This document shows, one piece after another, positions 19,385 to 36,300 of a DNA stretch of 64,000 nt. Location of the stretch: assembly GCF_023055435.1 (NCBI RefSeq), contig NW_025964334.1, forward strand, positions 11,656,001 through 11,720,000, in the 5' to 3' direction. The notes under the pieces are model-generated. The model worked only from the letters and a program-made list of their open reading frames with translations, had not been told where the DNA came from and made no database searches. How positions within the stretch are numbered: position 1 is the first letter of the stretch; each line of letters starts with the position of its first letter. The translations under genes and the position numbers were made by a program. The stretch comes from Haliotis rufescens (taxonomy: Eukaryota).

Positions 19385-19651
19385 GGTTGGTTGGTTTGTT
19401 GTTTAACGCCGCACTCAGCAATATTCCAGCTATATGACGGCGGTCTGTAAATAATCGACTCTGGACCAGACAATCCAGTGATTAATATCATGCGCATCGA
19501 TCCACGCAATTGGGATTGATGACATGTATCAACCAAGTCAGCGAGTCTGACCACCCGATCCCGTTAGTCGCCTTTTACGACAAGCATAGTCACCTTTTAC
19601 GGCAAGCATGGGTTGCTGAAGACCTATTCTACCCCGGAATCTTCACGGGTC
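19385..19651 (-). mobile_element. Family A short retroposon, full-length copy
   Basis: Begins GACCCGTGAAGATTCCGGGGTAGAATAGGTCTTCAGCAACCC, ends GCTGGAATATTGCTGAGTGCGGCGTTAAACAACAAACCAACC; TSD AGAAACTGTATGTT. Confidence 0.92.
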
Positions 19652-21580: not shown

Positions 21581-23079
21581 TACTAGCCACATTAAGAAAC
21601 TGTGCACGGAGAAAATATAGATATAAGGGCACACCGTCCATATATGAAATATAGGTTTGAACACAGCAATTATTGGAGACATTCAAACGCTCATGCACGT
21701 GCCATGCGATATGACGTCATTGTTGGGGGCCTATGGACGTGCAATGTGTTACTGCACGTGCATCCTGTGCAGCTGTACACAGCATGTGCAACTCAAAATT
21801 CGCTGTCACTTTGGAAAGCATGATCTGTGGTCATTCAAAAATTCAAAACTTCTCAGGCGCAGACACAAGCATATTACAAGCAAATCATGCCAAGATTGAC
21901 AGCTGCACAGCGTCATGAAGCCATTGGAATGATCCGAGCGAGAATGAGGCAACAACAGGTGGCAACACATTTCCAATGCCATCGTAACACGATATCGGCA
22001 TTGGTGAGGCGTTATCAGAACACAAATTACGTTGCTGACCACCCACGTTCAGGACGTCCCCGAGTAACGACGCCAAGACAGGACAGATGGATTCGAGTTA
22101 CACATCTCCGACACAGGTTCCAAACGGCAGTAACGACGTCCCAGACAATTCCTGGACTGCGCCGTATCCATTCCAACACTGTCAGGAATCGTTTACGTCA
22201 GTACGGGATTCGACCACGACGCCCTGCCATACGTCCCATCCTGACACACCGTCATCGAGTAAACCGTCTAAGATGGTGTCGAAATCATGTTCGCAAACCT
22301 CGAATATGGTGGGGAAATGTTGTCTTTACAGATGAATCGAGGTTCAACATTTCCCACAGTGACGGGCGCCAACGTGTCTACCGGCGTTTGGGAGAACGTT
22401 ATGCACGCAACTGTATTGTGGAGAGGAATCGTTTTGGAGGTGGCTCTGTGATGATTTGGGGTGGGATCACAGCACGGCACCGAACCCCTTTGGTGGTTGC
22501 TCAGGACAATCTCACCGGTGTTGGCTACAGAGATCAGATTCTGAGGCCTGTGGTCATTCCTTTCCTGCAACGTCATGGCCCGGGATTGACATTTCAACAG
22601 GACAACGCTCGTCCTCACACGGCTAGGGTCGCAATGGATTTCCTTCATCATAACAATGTCATGTTACTGCCATGGCCTGCAGTTTCTCCAGATCTCTCCC
22701 CAATAGAGCATGTGTGGGATGAAATGGAGCGCCGTCTGCGTCGTCTTCCACATCCTCCAGATAACGTCCGTGACTTGGCACAGGATTTGAGGAGGATATG
22801 GCATGCCCATTTGGTGTACTCCATGCGTCGCCGATGCACTGCTGTGATTCACGCAGAGGGTGGTCATACCCGTTATTGACTTTGTGACTTTGTCGTATGA
22901 CCCCCTACTCCATTTTGATCTTCTGACGTCATCGTAACAGATGTTGTTCAGGTCCCGTTGACATTTTCTTATGGTCCGATCATTCAGCTGCTACAGCGTC
23001 TGCATCATTTGTTCTTGCTGTGTTGTATTTCAATCCAGAATATATTTTCTCCGTGCACAGTTTCTTTATGTGGCTAGTA
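21581..23079 (+). mobile_element. Full-length Tc1 (DD34E) DNA transposon
   Basis: TIR TACTAGCCACATTAAGAAACTGTGCACGGAGAAAATATA / TATATTTTCTCCGTGCACAGTTTCTTTATGTGGCTAGTA (one mismatch); TA TSD. Confidence 0.96.
21887..22879 (+). CDS. Tc1 transposase, 330 aa
   Basis: Paired-like HTH with GRPR linker, VVFTDESRF, FQQDNARPH, PDLSPIEHVW (D-34-E), GGHTRY end. Confidence 0.95.
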   Translation: MPRLTAAQRHEAIGMIRARMRQQQVATHFQCHRNTISALVRRYQNTNYVADHPRSGRPRVTTPRQDRWIRVTHLRHRFQTAVTTSQTIPGLRRIHSNTVRNRLRQYGIRPRRPAIRPILTHRHRVNRLRWCRNHVRKPRIWWGNVVFTDESRFNISHSDGRQRVYRRLGERYARNCIVERNRFGGGSVMIWGGITARHRTPLVVAQDNLTGVGYRDQILRPVVIPFLQRHGPGLTFQQDNARPHTARVAMDFLHHNNVMLLPWPAVSPDLSPIEHVWDEMERRLRRLPHPPDNVRDLAQDLRRIWHAHLVYSMRRRCTAVIHAEGGHTRY

Positions 23080-26874: not shown

Positions 26875-28633
26875 CTGCAAAACAAAAGCATATCTTAAGA
26901 CATTACCTTATATTCGTGTGTTTGTTTGTTTCTTGTTTCACGCTGCACACAGCAATATTCAAGTTATATATGTAAATAATCGCGTCTGGACCAGACCATC
27001 CAGTGATTGACATCATGAGCATCGATCCACGCAATTGGGAAATGATGACATGTATAACCAAGTCAACTGAGCATGACCACGATAGCGTTAGTCGCCTCTT
27101 ACGGCAAGCATGGGTTGCTGAAGACCTATTCTCTATCCGGTCCTTCAAGGGTCTAATTCGCAAGAAATGCTGTGAAAATATAATCACTTTCGACAAAGTT
27201 TCGTATCCACAGGTTATGTTTCCTAGATCTGGACAGTGAATGTTATTGGAAATATTTAACCCATTCTGGTGTTCCCACACCATAGTGTTACTGGGATATT
27301 GTAAATACGGCTATAAACCCCACTCACTGAAAACCCCGAAGAAACTGCACTGACAAACAGTTCGATAACTGCGTGAGGGAGTGAGGGAGTTTTACGCCAC
27401 TTTTAGCAATATTCCAGCAGGGGGACACCAGAAATGGGCTTCACACATTGTTCCCATGTCGGGATTCGAACCCGGGTCTTCGGCGTGATGAGAGAACGCT
27501 TAAACCAGTGAGAGAACAGGAATGATGTGTGGATTGGGATTACGCCGGCTTCAGCACCAGTAAAGCCCACCCGTGAAGATCCGGGTCAGAATAAGTCTTC
27601 AGCAACCCATGCTTCCCGTAATAGGCGACTGTGCTTGTCGTGAGAGGTGACTAACGGAATCGGGTGGTCAGGCTCGCTGACTTGGTTCATGCATATCATC
27701 GTATCCCAATTGCGTTGATCGATGATCGTGGTATCAATCACTGGATTGTCTGATCCAAACTCGATTATATACAAACCGCCGTCATATAGCTGAATATTGC
27801 TGAGTGTTGCGTTACACAACAAACAAACAAAGAAAACCAAAAAAAACAATAGAGATATGGACATGCGGCGTGGGACACCAGAAACGAAGGCGTTAACCAC
27901 CAGTCTACCCTACTGACTTTGAAAACAAGAATTGGTAAGAGGCAAGTCAATGGATCGGGTGGTCATACTCGGGGACTCGAACAACAACCTTTGTAAAAGG
28001 ACTCCACATATATGATAGATGTACATGGTATTCAATGTTGTATTTCAAAAGGTGCAGTTAGGTAGCCGAATGGGTAAGGAGGTCGCTCGTCAAGTCAAAA
28101 TCCATGGTTCGATTCCCCACATGGGTACAATATGTAAAGCCTATTACTGATGTCCCCGCTGTGATAATGCAGAAATATTAGCAAACGCGGCGTAAAACCA
28201 TACTCACTCACTCATACATCAAACCGTCCACGTGGTTTACGGAATAAAACAAAATGTGTAAACCAGACTCACGCTTTGTTACGATGAGGCTGTCATAAAA
28301 TTGCCAACTATATTCATCAATCAATGTTTAAGTTATCGTCACGATCTGACTCAAATATCCGGGGTAGAACAGGTCTTCAGCAACCCATGCTTGCCGTAAA
28401 AGGCGATTATGCTTGTCGTAAGAGGCGACTAACGGGATCGGATGGTCAGGCTCGCTGACTTGGTTAATGCATGAAATCGATCCCAATTGCTTGAATCGAT
28501 GCTCGTGATGTCAATCACTGGATTGTCTGGCTCGATTATTTACAGACAGACGCAATATAGCTTGAATATTGCTGAGTGCGGCGTTAAACAACAAACACTC
28601 ACTCAGTCACTCACTCACACAAAACAGACTCAC

Positions 28634-28791: not shown

Positions 28792-28877
28792 CTACAACGA
28801 CGACTCATGTTAAGGAACGACAGTTTAATGATTTGGTATGAAGGGGGAGATTTGCCAGGATGTTTGTTTGAGACATG

Positions 28878-29305
28878 TGTAGCGGCCATAAGATGTCCAA
28901 GTCCGGTGATGGGATTCGAACCACGGACCGTCTGATCAGAGGTCGGACGCCTTGTCCACATGACCAAAGAGGTTAACCCCGTCAGCAAGCTGACAAGGTT
29001 AGGATGTCATATGTGGGATGACTCCACGCCATGCTACATACTCCCCCGTCAACAGAAGGCACGTCTTGGGCCTCATACTAGGGAACTGAGACTTAATTTG
29101 CTCAAATTTAATATGAACGTGCTCAGCCCCACGTTGGGCGCCAATGTAGCGGCCATAAAATGTCCGAGTCCCGTGATGGGATTCGAACCACGGGCCTTCA
29201 GTTCAGAAGTCGGACGCCTTGTCCATATGACCAAAGAGGTTAACCCCGTCAGCAAGCTGACAAGGTAAGGATGTCATCTGTGGGATGAATCCATGTCCTG
29301 CAACA
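28878..29305 (-). mobile_element. TRIM (miniature LTR retrotransposon) with tRNA-like sequence in both LTRs, Helenus-type
   Basis: Two 161-bp LTRs TGTAGC...ACA (28878-29038, 29145-29305); 4-bp TSD CATG; PBS TGGCGCCCAACGTGGGGC (29143-29126); PPT GACGGGGGAGTA (29050-29039); A and B boxes inside each LTR. Confidence 0.93.
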
Positions 29306-32300
29306 CATGTTTTCAGTCATTGCTTGATAAATGCATTATCATACCGCAATGTCAGAATAATAAGATCTGATTGGTTCACGTGATCTTGATAAAATACGAT
29401 GTATCGCGCCATGGAGAGAAATAAATAACAACTTTCATCCAGGTGCGTTTACTTGAAAACTATTTTCATACCTATCCTACCAGGAATTACGCCGTTTGCA
29501 AACTAAAATAAGCAATACTACATCAGACTACCCCAGAGAACAGGATCCAAAACAAGTTAAAGCGATGCGATCCGATGCAACGCAATCAACATTAGGAATA
29601 TATTCTCGAAATGAAATCATTCCTCTCTTTTGAATTCAATACCAAGCTTGAAGGGCATATATAGTTTGCTTCTCGTGATGACAAACGACCTTCAGGTGAA
29701 AACTTTTGATGATAATATTCTGACATAATCACTATTTTAAGTTGAAAACAAATGAACATTCCTAAGTACTTCGAATGATACAGACCATTTTTAAATAAGT
29801 GTTTGAAATTCTTTACTGGAAGTAGTATTGATACTAACTCGCTGTTATATTATTGAAACAGAAGTTGTTATTGTTATCGGTACTGATCATAATATTGATA
29901 CTGACCTTTTAGTGGGGCTTTTACATGGGACTGACATTGTTTTTAAAATTTAAATAGTTATTGATATTTCACCTGTTATTGACATTTTAAAGTGGAACGT
30001 ATAACCGTACATGCTGATCAATTTAATACCAACAAATACTCTTTAATGACAAAAATATGCTATTGTTGTTACGCTTGTGTTTCATAAATTGATTTTAACT
30101 GAATACAATTCCATGAAAACGTAAACACACAAATTTTAACCGTCGTTATACAAAAGAATCCGCACTTTCTAAAAAATGAATTATAAAACGCATATAAATA
30201 ATTCTAAAATACATACAGAGTACATTCTATCTCGACAGCCACCTGTGTTAGTACTAAATCTTTCTTCCCGTAAATGGAGTACTTCACTGCTCAATATACA
30301 ATGTACTGCTATAATTATCAATCTGTAGTTTCATACTGATATTGATATCTAAGCCAATAATATGTGACCGAATCAGGTTTCAACTAGTTTCGCTGGTTCG
30401 CGTAGAGAATGGACGGAATCAAATGAACTGAATTAAATCATAATCGGTCTTTTCATCTCCGCGTAATTTTATCATCTAATTAATCAAACTTTGCTGAAAA
30501 GGAGCATGCATGTGTTCACACAGGTTGTGTGTACATGTTGTGCATGTTTCTCACGGGTCTCTTACTTTAGGGTCGGTCTAATGAAATGGAAATATTATTG
30601 ACACCCCTATAATAAATTACCGGTCCCCTATGAAGGAACCTTAGCTGAGGTCAAGCTAGTCCAGTGTTAGGAATAGACACCGACCCGTAGGCCCGGGGCC
30701 TATAGACTTGTTCTCGGGTCGATACTTAAATTTCAATTTATTTTAAACTGTAAACATGGTAAATGAATCATAACTCTGAGATCTCTTTGTGAAACGGGGT
30801 CCAGCTTTAAAGTACTCTGGTCTTCCCACTTTCAACACCCTAGCACCGTCAAAATAATATATAGTTTCACGTCATATGTTTCATTTATTAAATCTATCAC
30901 TTTTCACAAAGTCGGAAAATACGTATTTCGTTTCAATTTATCAAATTTTATCAATAGATTTAAAATTATTAACTTTTTACCGCAATGTTGTTGAAGAAAC
31001 ATAATCTGGGATACATGCTACGACAACTGGTCTATAAACACACAATGCCATTTTAGAAAGTGGTCAAATGTAACAAATGTCATATTTGGGATAACTCTTT
31101 CTTAGTAAAGTACAGATTCTCGTACTTGTTTAGGTTGAGTCCCGTTCGATGGCATTTGTTACATTTGACGTTTCAAGCACAACATAAATAAATTAACTAA
31201 AGTAACAAATAAAATCTACAAACATATTTCTAAAATTTGTCAACTTACATCTAAGTTACTGTTTCCATGTTTTCGTGCGATCGTGTGATGTAAGTCAAAA
31301 GACACCTCGGTATTTGTCGCCTCGATTTTCAGGCTCGGACACGATGTTTAATGTCAAAATATATGCATGAGATATATTTGTCACAGGTCATAACCTAGCA
31401 CGATATGTCCACGAAGTTCCATATTTTAAACATAAGTCGCGATTTCCTTCTTAAAACGTTCAAAATAACACGATTTAACCAAAGACTTTCGCCCAAAACT
31501 GCAATACATCATACACGAGGACATTATCCATTGCTGTAATTTGATTGGCTGCCTTAGGTCACGTGCGTGATATGGACCAATCACGATCCCTATATTAGAT
31601 TACGGCAACAGCGTTCTATGCAATAAAAGCGCATGTTACAACTACGAAAACACTCCTGGCGAGGTTACTGTAAAAACTTTTGATATTCAGAGCTGTCTAA
31701 CGATACCAAACATCGAACGAATCTTCGCACGAGTTATTTAAAGAAAGCTTCGAAAACGGAGGTATTTTCTCCTGTCACTGAGCGGAAAGCCACTATTATC
31801 GGGAACTATGTGATGACAAATCGTACTTAAATAAAAAAGAAATTCACAACAACGATATCTTTAAATTGCCGAAAATCGCCATAATCTGTGCTTCCTTGGT
31901 GCTAACTATGGACGTTATGAATGTGTAAGCTTACATTTTTTTAAATAAAAGCAAACTTAATAGAGTTATACATGAATTATTAAAATAATGTGATATCAAA
32001 TCTTTCATGATTATAAACGGAAGGGTTAGACCTAGCAAATGGTGTATGACATGTAGTAGCAAAGATGTTTTAGAAGCTGATAGTTTCCACACAACTGGCT
32101 TCATCTACAATGGGTCTCCGGGGACTCGTTGTAATCGCGGTAAAAGCTTCTGGTTGACTGGTTGTGTTTTGTAATTAATATTGCAAGAGTATGTCTCCCT
32201 GCTTCAGCTAAAATGTTTGATCCCTCAGTTTTTCAACTGGGCCGAGAGTTTTGGAAATATGCTGGTCCTTAAGGCGCTCAATTTAAACTGCCTCAGTCGA

Positions 32301-33358: not shown

Positions 33359-36300
33359 TACTCAACAACAAAAAATCTTGTGACACCAATATTTTAGTGA
33401 ATTTTTCAAACAAGTAAAGTTTGGTTTTCAATATTGTAGTACATGTATGGAATCAAGTCACAAAAACGCAACTGCTACAGAAAAGCATGCATTCCATGCA
33501 AAAGTTTACTTTTATGCAAGCCCCATGCATTTCACTACCGAGGAATGTATAAAAACATGTGCGTTATCGGGATTCCATATGCATTGTTTAGCATCGTGCT
33601 GACAACAACCACTCAGAAAAACAACAAAATTACGCAGTTATTCAACATTACGAAATTGCACGCCTGTCCGAAAATGAGCGCCTGCGAGCCATTGGTATGC
33701 TTGAAGCAGGATCGAGTCAACGTGATGTTGCAAGACAGTTTAACGTCCACAGAAACACCATTTGGTGTATTTGGCAACGTTGGCAACAGACGAATGCAGT
33801 CAGAGACCATCCTCGGAGTGGCAGGCCTCGCATAAACCAATAATCGACAAAACAACTGGATTCGAACAACACACCTACGAAATCGATTCCAGCCAGCAAC
33901 AGTGACTGCAAGAAGCATCTCTGGCCTTCGACGAATATCTTCACAAACTGTACGTCGTCGCCTCAGATGTGCAGGGATTGTCGCCAGAAGACCCGCCAGA
34001 CGTCCCATTTTGACAGGAAACCACAGTCAAGCACGTCTACAGTGGTGCAGACAGCGTCTACGCTGGACGACCATGCAGTGGGGACAAGTTCTATTCACTT
34101 ACGAGTCGCGTCTTCACCTCAGCCACAGCGATGGACGGATTCGAGTGTACCGTCGTCCAGGGGAACGTTACGTCATAATTGTGTCATTGTGGTAGAGGGA
34201 AATCTCAATGGACAGCGCTACCGCGACGAGATCATCGGCCTTGTTGTTCTACCGGTTTTTTGCGTCGTCATGGCCCAGGCATTACCTTTCAACATGACAA
34301 CGCCCGGCTTCATATTGCTCGACTTGCTCCAGTAGATATGGACAGATATCCCACAGGACTTTGTGCGACACCTGGTCCATGCCATGAGACGAAGATGTGT
34401 TGCTTGCATCGCAACCAGAGGTGGTCAGACACGCTACTAATTTGTGGATTGACATTTTGGCATGTTCATGTCTTTTATATGAAATCACGCATTTTCTGAA
34501 GTCAGTATGGCAAATTAAACCATTTGAACACTTACAGGAGTCTTTTATCTGTTGCAAACCGAAATTGTTTCAGATTTGGTAAAAAACAAAACTTTGCTTT
34601 AAATCTTATTCATTGTCACAGGTATAATATATTCATCTTAAATATGCTAAATCAGTATTTCAAAATATTAAAACGAAAACTTTTTTGTGCTTTCATCGAT
34701 TTCACAAAAGCGTTCGACAGTACATCGAAAGTAGGCCTATGGTACAAGATGTTATCATACAACATAGAGGGGAGATTCCTCAAGTTAGTGAAAAACATGT
34801 GCAGTAATATAAAATCTTGCGTTTTGGTTGATAACCAAATTTCTAACTTCTTTTATAGTTATTCCGGGCTTCGACAAGGAGAAAATCTCTCTCCATTATT
34901 ATTTTCGATTTTTCTCAATGATTTAGATGTATATCTTGAGAGCAAAGTTTGTAGGGGCGTTGACATCAATTGTGTTCATGATGATTATGTGTATATGTGT
35001 ATTAAATTCTTTATTTTGTTGTACGCAGATGATGCGATACTTTTAGCTGAATCCAAGAAAGATCTCCAAAATTCTCTTGATGTGTTCAAAAAATACTGCG
35101 ATGTGTGGAAACTCAATGTTAACATTGCCAAAACTAAGATTATAATATTTGGAGGAGGCGTAGGTAAAAAATCTAAATTATCTTTTCAATTTGATTCTAA
35201 ACCAATTGAAATTATAGATAATCATACGTATCTAGGTATCAACGTTCATCGCAATAGGAGATTTAATACCGCAATAAACGATTTACTGTCCAGCTCTAAA
35301 AAGGCCATGTTTGCACTCCTGAAAAAATCAAGAAACCTCAATCTAGCACTTGATACTGTAAACCAATTGTTTGATATGTTAATACTACCTATAGCCTTGT
35401 ATGGATGTGAAATATGGGGTTGTGAAAATGTTATAAACATTGAAAAAGTTCACCTTAAATTTCTAAAGTTTGCTACTGGTTTGCGATCATCAACTCCTAA
35501 CTTTATGGTTTACGGTGAACTTGGACGTTTTCCTGTGAACATTACAATTGCTAAAAGAATGATCTCATTTTGGTATAATTTAGAAACCATATCTTCTTTC
35601 AAGTTCGTCATCAAGCATCCTTAAACCGTTCAAATTAGATCACATCCTCAATATTAGTAATAGTAACGTATGGATATCTCACATAAAAAGTATTTTAAAC
35701 AGTTGTGGCTTGACCTATGTATTTGATAATCCTGGTTGCGTTTGTAAACAGTGGTTTGTCTCTATGGTAGAAACAGTACTTAAAGATCATTTTATATAAC
35801 AATGGAGGGATGATATAGATAAAAGTTCAAAAGGTAATTACTATAAATTGTTCAAAGATCTACCGTCGTTTGAAAAATACCTCCTGCTACCTGATTATTT
35901 CTCTCGACCTATTATGTCATTTCGGACATCGAATCATTATTTACCTGTAGAGACGGGCCGCTGGAAAAATACACCCAGAATCAATAGAAATTGTAACCTA
36001 TGTAGCTCACCGGCGACAGCCGACGAGTTTCATTTTTTATTTAAGTGCTCCTTTTTTGATACCATGAGATCACATTATATTGCAATTTATCTTTGTAAAT
36101 GGCCGTATCTCGCAGTTCAAAGTTCAAAGTTTTATTTACCTCAAATAATTGCTTAATCGTGAAAAATATCTCCAGATTTATAAGAATTATTAATAATGTT
36201 GTCAGACGATGAGTACAACACTATAATCTACAATTTACCAAGTGATCACTACAATTTATTGTTTATGTTATGATTTTATATGTACTGTTCCTGTACCACC

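Follow-up and report, generated by a model that had tools for sequence, protein, structure and literature searches.

Structure of the Element in the Window

The window analyzed here, the whole stretch of 64,000 nucleotides of abalone DNA, contains on its minus strand a non-coding element of 428 bp. A repeat search of the window returned two direct repeats of 161 nt (28878-29038 and 29145-29305), which are identical at 145 of 161 positions (90%), run from TG to CA and enclose an interior of 106 nt (29039-29144). In the sense of the element, the repeat at 29145-29305 is the 5' LTR and that at 28878-29038 the 3' LTR, and the whole is flanked by the target site duplication (TSD) CATG, at 29306-29309 on the 5' side and at 28874-28877 on the 3' side. 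On the minus strand, a single T separates the 5' LTR from an 18-nt primer-binding site (PBS; 29126-29143), and the interior ends in the PPT GGGGGAGTA (29039-29047), which abuts the 3' LTR. Stop-free stretches across the element matched no Pfam family. A sequence-only reading of this DNA had proposed the same layout, with 161-bp LTRs differing at about 16 positions, and on reanalysis it holds base for base.

Both LTRs carry the same internal features, again on the minus strand. A tRNA-Arg-like unit occupies LTR positions 66-140 (28899-28973 in the 3' LTR and 29166-29240 in the 5' LTR), as delimited by alignment to host tRNA-Arg, and within it lie an A-box-like motif (28956-28966 and 29223-29233) and a B box (28912-28922 and 29179-29189). 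Just upstream of the unit stands a hairpin with a stem of 10 bp (28976-28999 and 29243-29266), which was defined by folding of a young copy (-13.4 kcal/mol, z = -5.3). LTR positions 146-149 read TTTT in the 5' LTR (29157-29160), a putative Pol III terminator and R/U5 border, and TCTT in the 3' LTR (28890-28893). The sequence-only reading had regarded the TTTT of the 5' LTR as a possible defect of this copy, a view that had to be reversed: an A-flanked TTTT is the norm of the family, found in 50 of the 56 distinct LTRs sampled and in the 5' and 3' LTR alike of the young copies aligned, and the TCTT of the 3' LTR is the mutation.

Identity to the young members of the family amounts to 94.4% for the 3' LTR, 93.2% for the 5' LTR and 93.4% for the interior. 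Against 11 young copies the element shows 26-27 differences, and 16 separate its own two LTRs; the window thus holds an old and decayed member of a family otherwise very young in this genome. Because of these 16 LTR-LTR differences and the loss of the 3' TTTT, the copy in the window is most likely inert. The sequence-only reading had placed it in an intron, some 85 bp from a splice acceptor, but neither open reading frames nor Pfam confirmed this or indicated a recognizable exon in its flanks, which consist of SINE copies. An abundant SINE of approximately 270 bp, starting with GGTTGGTTGG, surrounds the element (window positions 19385-19651, 26900-28500 and elsewhere). The plus strand of the window also contains a Tc1/mariner-type transposase ORF (21827-22879; HTH_Tnp_Tc3_2 and DDE_3) and a reverse-transcriptase ORF (34524-35624; RVT_1). 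None of the window's masked runs of N comes near the element.

Copies of the Family in the Abalone Genome

The host was placed by protein comparison. The product of an intronless HSP70 gene of this genome is 98% identical to that of Haliotis fulgens, 97% to that of H. cracherodii and 93-94% to those of H. rubra, H. asinina and H. diversicolor, whereas full-length hits assigned to other genera reach 76-80%; the genome is accordingly that of an abalone, a vetigastropod. A search for mitochondrial COX1 gave no match. A search of the 1.33-Gb host genome yielded 59 full-length matches of 428 bp among 1,696 first-look candidates. With up to three mismatches allowed, a 30-mer from the head of the LTR occurs 2,013 times and a 30-mer from the interior 699 times genome-wide, and the reversed control gave 0 in both cases. 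A 30-mer from the U3 part occurs 4,738 times, a count inflated by minisatellites of 49/50 bp that stem from U3. Among the stand-alone full-length copies, the first 12 examined (the window copy and 11 others) all have distinct, perfect 4-bp TSDs. The 428-bp structure was found at all 15 stand-alone loci examined; each of 14 has its own perfect TSD, and at the fifteenth the TSD matches at three of four positions. Six of 10 solo LTRs have kept a perfect 4-bp TSD, and one TSD encloses each of three tandem LTR-interior arrays (3/3), which have a period of 267 bp and contain 3, 3, and 16 LTRs. The assumption of the sequence-only reading that the window element belongs to a family, and is no chance tandem duplication, is thus well founded, since the copy counts, the distinct TSDs, the solo LTRs and the arrays together refute such a duplication.

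In the 11 copies outside the window, the LTR pairs are identical at 158-161 of 161 positions and the copies differ from one another at 0-10 of 428 positions; identity between most copies is about 99%. Because the copies are nearly identical, the family is judged to have moved very recently. Over 25 TSD-bounded insertions, the three positions before the duplicated four bases are A in 17, T in 20, and G in 17 cases, and the three positions after them C in 16, A in 16, and T in 12 cases. This corresponds to a palindromic target of approximately ATG-N4-CAT, which is the mark of an integrase and not of a LINE.

Pieces of the family have also been amplified in other ways. In sample L085 (G000:C1:43.92-43.99 Mb), some 30 tandem units of about 2,250 bp each hold a solo LTR with the TSD CTTA; this insertion was hence amplified later, along with its host segment. 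Minisatellites of 38-50 bp made from LTR pieces, either the U3 part or the tRNA-like head, occur at G000:C2:43949899-43951199, L063:3648-5500, G000:C556:33730449-33731091 and in L091. A shorter variant with a period of 211 bp and an interior of about 57 nt lies at G000:C101:5889800-5890029 (L047); its LTR is cut directly after the TTTT and joined straight to the PBS.

Primer-Binding Site and tRNA-Like Unit

The pattern of the host tRNA-Lys 3' end has at least 198 matches in the genome, and those listed lie in a tandem cluster with a period of 297 bp. One gene taken from this cluster was identified by ARAGORN as tRNA-Lys(CTT), and the PBS is complementary to the 3' end of this tRNA, CCA included, over all 18 positions, so that the assignment of the primer to tRNA-Lys(CUU), made earlier from the sequence, is upheld with a gene of the host itself. 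Tandem clusters of tRNA-Lys(CTT) and tRNA-Arg(ACG) genes are located at G000:C79:12.77-12.80 Mb and G000:C55:3.8-58 kb, as judged by matches to 3'-end and anticodon-arm patterns with one gene per cluster confirmed by ARAGORN. The tRNA-Arg(ACG) pattern has 198 matches genome-wide, and the 100 listed are all on one contig.

Each LTR in the window has a perfect B box, GGTTCGAATCC (11/11), and the A-box-like motif TGGTCATRTGG, with a tRNA-gene-like spacing of 44 nt from start to start. The A box is off the consensus TRGCNNAGTGG at two specified positions; set against the A-box motif of Helenus elements (TRGCY...YGG), the LTR reads TGGTC...TGG, with one departure from TRGCY. Aligned from D loop through B box, a young LTR and the host tRNA-Arg(ACG) gene are identical at 36 of 46 positions. 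The local alignment score of 52 compares with 15.4 +/- 2.5 for 1,000 shuffles (z = 14.5), while the opposite strand gave z = 0.3 and tRNA-Lys z = 2.6, the latter matching only at the B box. By this alignment the LTR unit is clearly derived from tRNA-Arg, in agreement with the origin suggested from the sequence alone, and it is itself no tRNA: ARAGORN and Rfam (E <= 1) detected no tRNA in the element, and a cloverleaf fold of the unit was not found, the minimum-energy fold being a different one (z = -1.5) and the acceptor stem gone. In place of the T arm, the sequence as read by eye has a stem of 5 bp and a loop of 13 nt. Differences per site are 0.019 in the A box, 0.029 in the B box, and 0.041 over the LTR as a whole, in a set of 56 LTRs that are mostly too young to inform on this point. 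The U3 part measures only about 65 nt, and by eye it contains no TATA-like motif.

A Ty3/Gypsy Partner and Mosaic Insertions

Autonomous elements with the same primer were searched for by the 18-nt PBS followed by a next base other than that of the miniature element. The genome contains 41 such sites (reversed control 0), and one Gypsy element accounts for most of the 30 PBS sites examined. This element is about 9.2 kb long, has LTRs of 871 bp and was found with the 4-bp TSDs TAAC and TGTA; in each of two copies the LTR pair is identical over the first 300 bp, the part compared. It encodes a PNMA-like gag of 522 aa and a pol of 1,386 aa, in which Pfam places RVT_1, RT_RNaseH, Integrase_H2C2, and rve in the Ty3/Gypsy order. 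Among the matches listed, at least 16 copies are 100% identical over 1.2 kb of pol. Its closest public proteins are about 50% identical, and several of these are from bivalves or are bivalve-associated.

The LTRs of the Gypsy element and of the miniature element (a TRIM, see below) share their first 10 bases (TGTAGCAGGG) and their last six (GCTACA), and both elements have the same 18-nt PBS. Beyond the tips and the PBS, the comparison of the two revealed no similarity above shuffled controls. A second Gypsy family, whose pol is 79% identical to that of the first, shares the PBS and has an LTR tip of very similar sequence; because of this, the partner may be a small clade instead of one family, with the second family also acting as helper.

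Three loci join parts of the TRIM and of the Gypsy element at LTR, PBS, and PPT borders, and in two of the three cases one TSD encloses the whole hybrid. The mosaic at L063:1642-3757 (TSD TCAA/TCAA) has TRIM LTRs at both ends and, inside, a Gypsy leader stretch of 1,074 nt, a partial Gypsy LTR and a TRIM interior. That at L064:5946-7353 (TSD CGCG/CGCG) begins with a complete Gypsy 5' LTR, which is followed by TRIM interior, LTR, interior, and LTR. The third, at L010:3-3428 (G000:C583:20393087-20396514), in which LTRs of the two elements alternate and the joints fall on PBS and PPT borders, has the order Gypsy LTR, four times TRIM interior plus TRIM LTR, 12 nt of PBS fused to a Gypsy PPT, Gypsy LTR, TRIM interior, TRIM LTR, and Gypsy interior. 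A hybrid that lies within one TSD was inserted as one DNA; the single-TSD hybrids therefore indicate that TRIM and Gypsy RNAs were reverse-transcribed in the same particle and that their ends were accepted by the same integrase. The Gypsy-type partner that the sequence-only reading had postulated has thus been found, with the same Lys PBS, the same LTR tips, 4-bp TSDs and TSD-bounded mosaics.

A different kind of junction is seen at L044:1259-1684 (G000:C57, near 30788052), where a 426-bp unit flanked by CGAA on both sides forms a head-to-head LTR pair. Here, the 239-bp LTR of a second family runs into AAA, the 18-nt Lys PBS and GCCAA, and a complete TRIM LTR follows in inverted orientation. 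L037 has the same junction and L050 a related one. Together with GCCA, the PBS forms a palindrome at 20 of 22 positions, so that two strong-stop DNAs may have annealed there and then integrated.

Comparison with Helenus and Other Known Systems

Helenus elements are TRIMs with tRNA-derived sequence in their LTRs (Kojima, 2024; PMC10886601). Those of animals have 4-bp TSDs, and their dependence on Gypsy elements has been presumed from similarity of the PBS alone; the mollusc hosts reported are pteriomorph bivalves only, and an Arg-type head is not among the heads described (Kojima, 2024; PMC10886601). The name Helenus and the 4-bp TSD in animals, both given in the sequence-only reading, are correct according to this source. 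The abalone element shows the general features of a TRIM, namely TG...CA LTRs, a short non-coding interior, a PBS, a PPT, dispersed copies, and solo LTRs, as well as those of Helenus, namely tRNA-derived sequence in the LTR, A- and B-box motifs (B box GGTTC) and a 4-bp TSD.

Comparison of LTR words with the published consensus file gave no sequence identity to the named Helenus families. The 12- to 17-mers taken from the LTR (tips, hairpin, and anticodon arm) as well as the tip TGTAGCAGGG are absent from that file, in which the Arg-type head motif GATCAGAAG has 0 occurrences. Of the exact words of 9 to 17 nt tried, the file contains only generic ones, from the B box, the PPT, a stretch of the PBS and the 3' tip (one 10-mer); the PPT 9-mer GGGGGAGTA was counted 12 times in it and, where its context was inspected, closes the interior. 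Because the words tried are absent from Kojima's published consensus sequences, the abalone element is, as far as sequence comparison goes, a new Helenus family and not a named one. Our literature search found no mention of Helenus in Haliotis, and gastropods are probably a new host class for Helenus. The earlier suggestion of an unreported family in this lineage is accordingly plausible, given a gastropod host and a head and tip absent from the published consensus sequences.

The closest counterparts in design are the Lys-primed Helenus elements of pteriomorph bivalves and nemerteans, for example Helenus-3_MiYe, Helenus-2_ArIr, and Helenus-1_LiLo (PMC10886601). Common to them and the abalone family are an LTR of about 160 bp, an interior of about 105 bp, a total length of about 425 bp, 4-bp TSDs, a tRNA-Lys(CUU) PBS one or two bases past the LTR, a PPT ending in GGGGGAGTA, tips of the TGTA...TACA type, an A/B-box unit in each LTR, and a presumed Gypsy partner. 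The abalone family differs from them in its gastropod host, its tRNA-Arg-like head and a PBS matched at all 18 positions, and in that its partner was identified by tips and TSD-bounded mosaics, beyond similarity of the PBS. The zebrafish Helenus LTR-11_DR likewise has a high copy number, tandem LTR-interior arrays, and 4-bp TSDs, but a tRNA-His PBS, an interior of 43 bp and another head (tRNA-Val in Figure 2c of Kojima, 2024), and it has no sequence relation to the abalone element.

Among other TRIMs, Cassandra of plants and Ajax of nemerteans also contain a Pol III promoter derived from a small RNA in each LTR, and Cassandra forms tandem arrays as well. These elements differ from the abalone family in that their LTR units are derived from 5S rRNA, their TSDs measure 5 bp and their lineages are different; Pol III transcripts have been demonstrated for Cassandra only, not for Ajax. 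By analogy, Cassandra and Ajax are probably the model for how the abalone element works. Similar to tRNA-derived SINEs (SINE2), the element is short and non-coding and has a tRNA-derived head with A and B boxes. SINE2 elements, however, are without LTRs, PBS, and PPT, are mobilized by LINEs, and have longer TSDs of variable length and a 3' tail, and the abalone element presents neither the single unit nor the LINE-type tail nor the variable TSDs of a SINE.

Proposed Mechanism and Rival Explanations

The TG...CA ends, the 4-bp TSDs at a palindromic site, the PBS, the PPT, the solo LTRs, and the arrays show that the family is copied and inserted by LTR-retrotransposon machinery, primed by tRNA-Lys(CUU), and that this machinery is common to it and a Gypsy family. 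We therefore regard the element as a non-autonomous terminal-repeat retrotransposon in miniature (TRIM) of the Helenus/TRIMp3 type, mobilized by Gypsy and putatively transcribed by Pol III, and assign this reading a probability of roughly 0.85. The role of the LTR unit as promoter, the start of transcription, the read-through, and the terminator are predicted from sequence features. In this model, the tRNA-Arg-derived A/B-box unit in each LTR would act as an internal Pol III promoter, and transcription would start near LTR position 64-66. Flanked by A, runs of four T are reportedly weak terminators for Pol III. The polymerase would pass the first TTTT, a weak one between A residues in the 5' LTR, and stop at that of the 3' LTR, resulting in an RNA of about 350 nt. 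The tRNA-like unit would then correspond to R, LTR positions 1-65 to U3, and the last 12 nt to U5.

Copies that start at LTR position 61-67 with unrelated DNA upstream were searched for, and two clean cases were obtained, both starting at position 66; the remaining matches were mostly old full LTRs, deletion variants, and head-derived minisatellites. As fossils of the RNA 5' end the two starts were rejected. Both abut SINE copies at TTAA, and they are for this reason better explained by SINE insertion. In the TRIM copies L088 and L092, the SINE of approximately 270 bp is inserted at the TTAA of LTR positions 63-66.

Three other explanations have to be weighed against this reading, and they differ from it in very different respects. 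One leaves the TRIM and its mobilization by Gypsy untouched and replaces Pol III by Pol II or by read-through transcription from the host, the tRNA-like unit being a promoterless relic of an old SINE or tRNA insertion. The imperfect A box and the lost cloverleaf are in line with a relic, and so is the lack of any clear excess of conservation in the boxes over the remaining LTR, although the 56 LTRs compared are mostly too young to be informative. Against this explanation stand the perfect B box at a tRNA-gene-like distance from the A box (44 nt, start to start), the T4 that closely follows the unit in 50 of 56 LTRs, a U3 of just about 65 nt with no TATA-like motif by eye, and the retention of A and B boxes in independent Helenus lineages (PMC10886601). 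We consider transcription by Pol II or read-through unlikely, while it retains more weight than either of the remaining two explanations.

These two concern the nature of the unit itself. That the LTR units are working tRNA-Arg genes spread by the element would agree with their Arg-like anticodon-arm region, but ARAGORN and the Rfam tRNA model recognized nothing even at E <= 1, the acceptor stem is lacking, the T arm is altered and the minimum-energy fold is no cloverleaf; large tandem clusters of genuine tRNA-Arg(ACG) genes are, moreover, already present in the genome. This makes the tRNA-gene explanation very improbable. Still less can be said for an ordinary tRNA-derived SINE that happens to lie here as a tandem duplicate, for which the tRNA-like head is the one argument. 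It is contradicted by the TG...CA ends, the 4-bp TSD, and the lack of an A-rich or LINE-type tail, by the PBS and PPT between the repeats, by the recurrence of the 428-bp structure at 15 stand-alone loci and of solo units with 4-bp TSDs, and by a head that is not commoner than U3 (2,013 vs. 4,738, the latter inflated by minisatellites). The tandem-duplicate explanation is refuted by the copies, their own TSDs, and the solo LTRs, and its probability is practically nil.

The preferred reading, a Helenus-type TRIM mobilized by Gypsy, can tentatively be extended. The abalone family may represent an independently born, tRNA-Arg-headed Helenus lineage, the first of gastropods. Its Pol III transcript of about 350 nt, with the tRNA-like unit as R and a leaky T4 at the end of R, would enter particles together with RNA from a currently active Ty3/Gypsy family; the TSD-bounded mosaics and the head-to-head pair, which also lies within a TSD and is joined at the near-palindromic Lys PBS, would be fossils of strand transfer from one template to the other. 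For this extended scenario as a whole, we put the chances at slightly less than even.

Significance

New here is that a partner Gypsy element is identified through shared tips and integrated hybrids. To our knowledge, the use of Pol III by Helenus-type elements has been demonstrated by no one. Elements of this type were first described in 2024, and their helpers in animals have been inferred by similarity of the PBS alone. The abalone brings together, in one genome, a very young and abundant TRIM and an equally young Gypsy element that have in common only the primer site and the LTR tips, plus hybrids of the two. This narrows what a helper needs to recognize to the LTR ends and the PBS, and makes the partnership testable. 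For genome annotation, about 2,000 tRNA-like B-box units and their arrays will confuse the identification of tRNAs and repeats in abalone genomes, and the LTR units with their B boxes may recruit Pol III factors near genes. If the Arg-headed lineage and its co-packaging with Gypsy are true, no animal TRIMp3 before this family would have had its helper assigned directly, and the family would provide a natural system for the entry of a Pol III RNA into a Gypsy particle.
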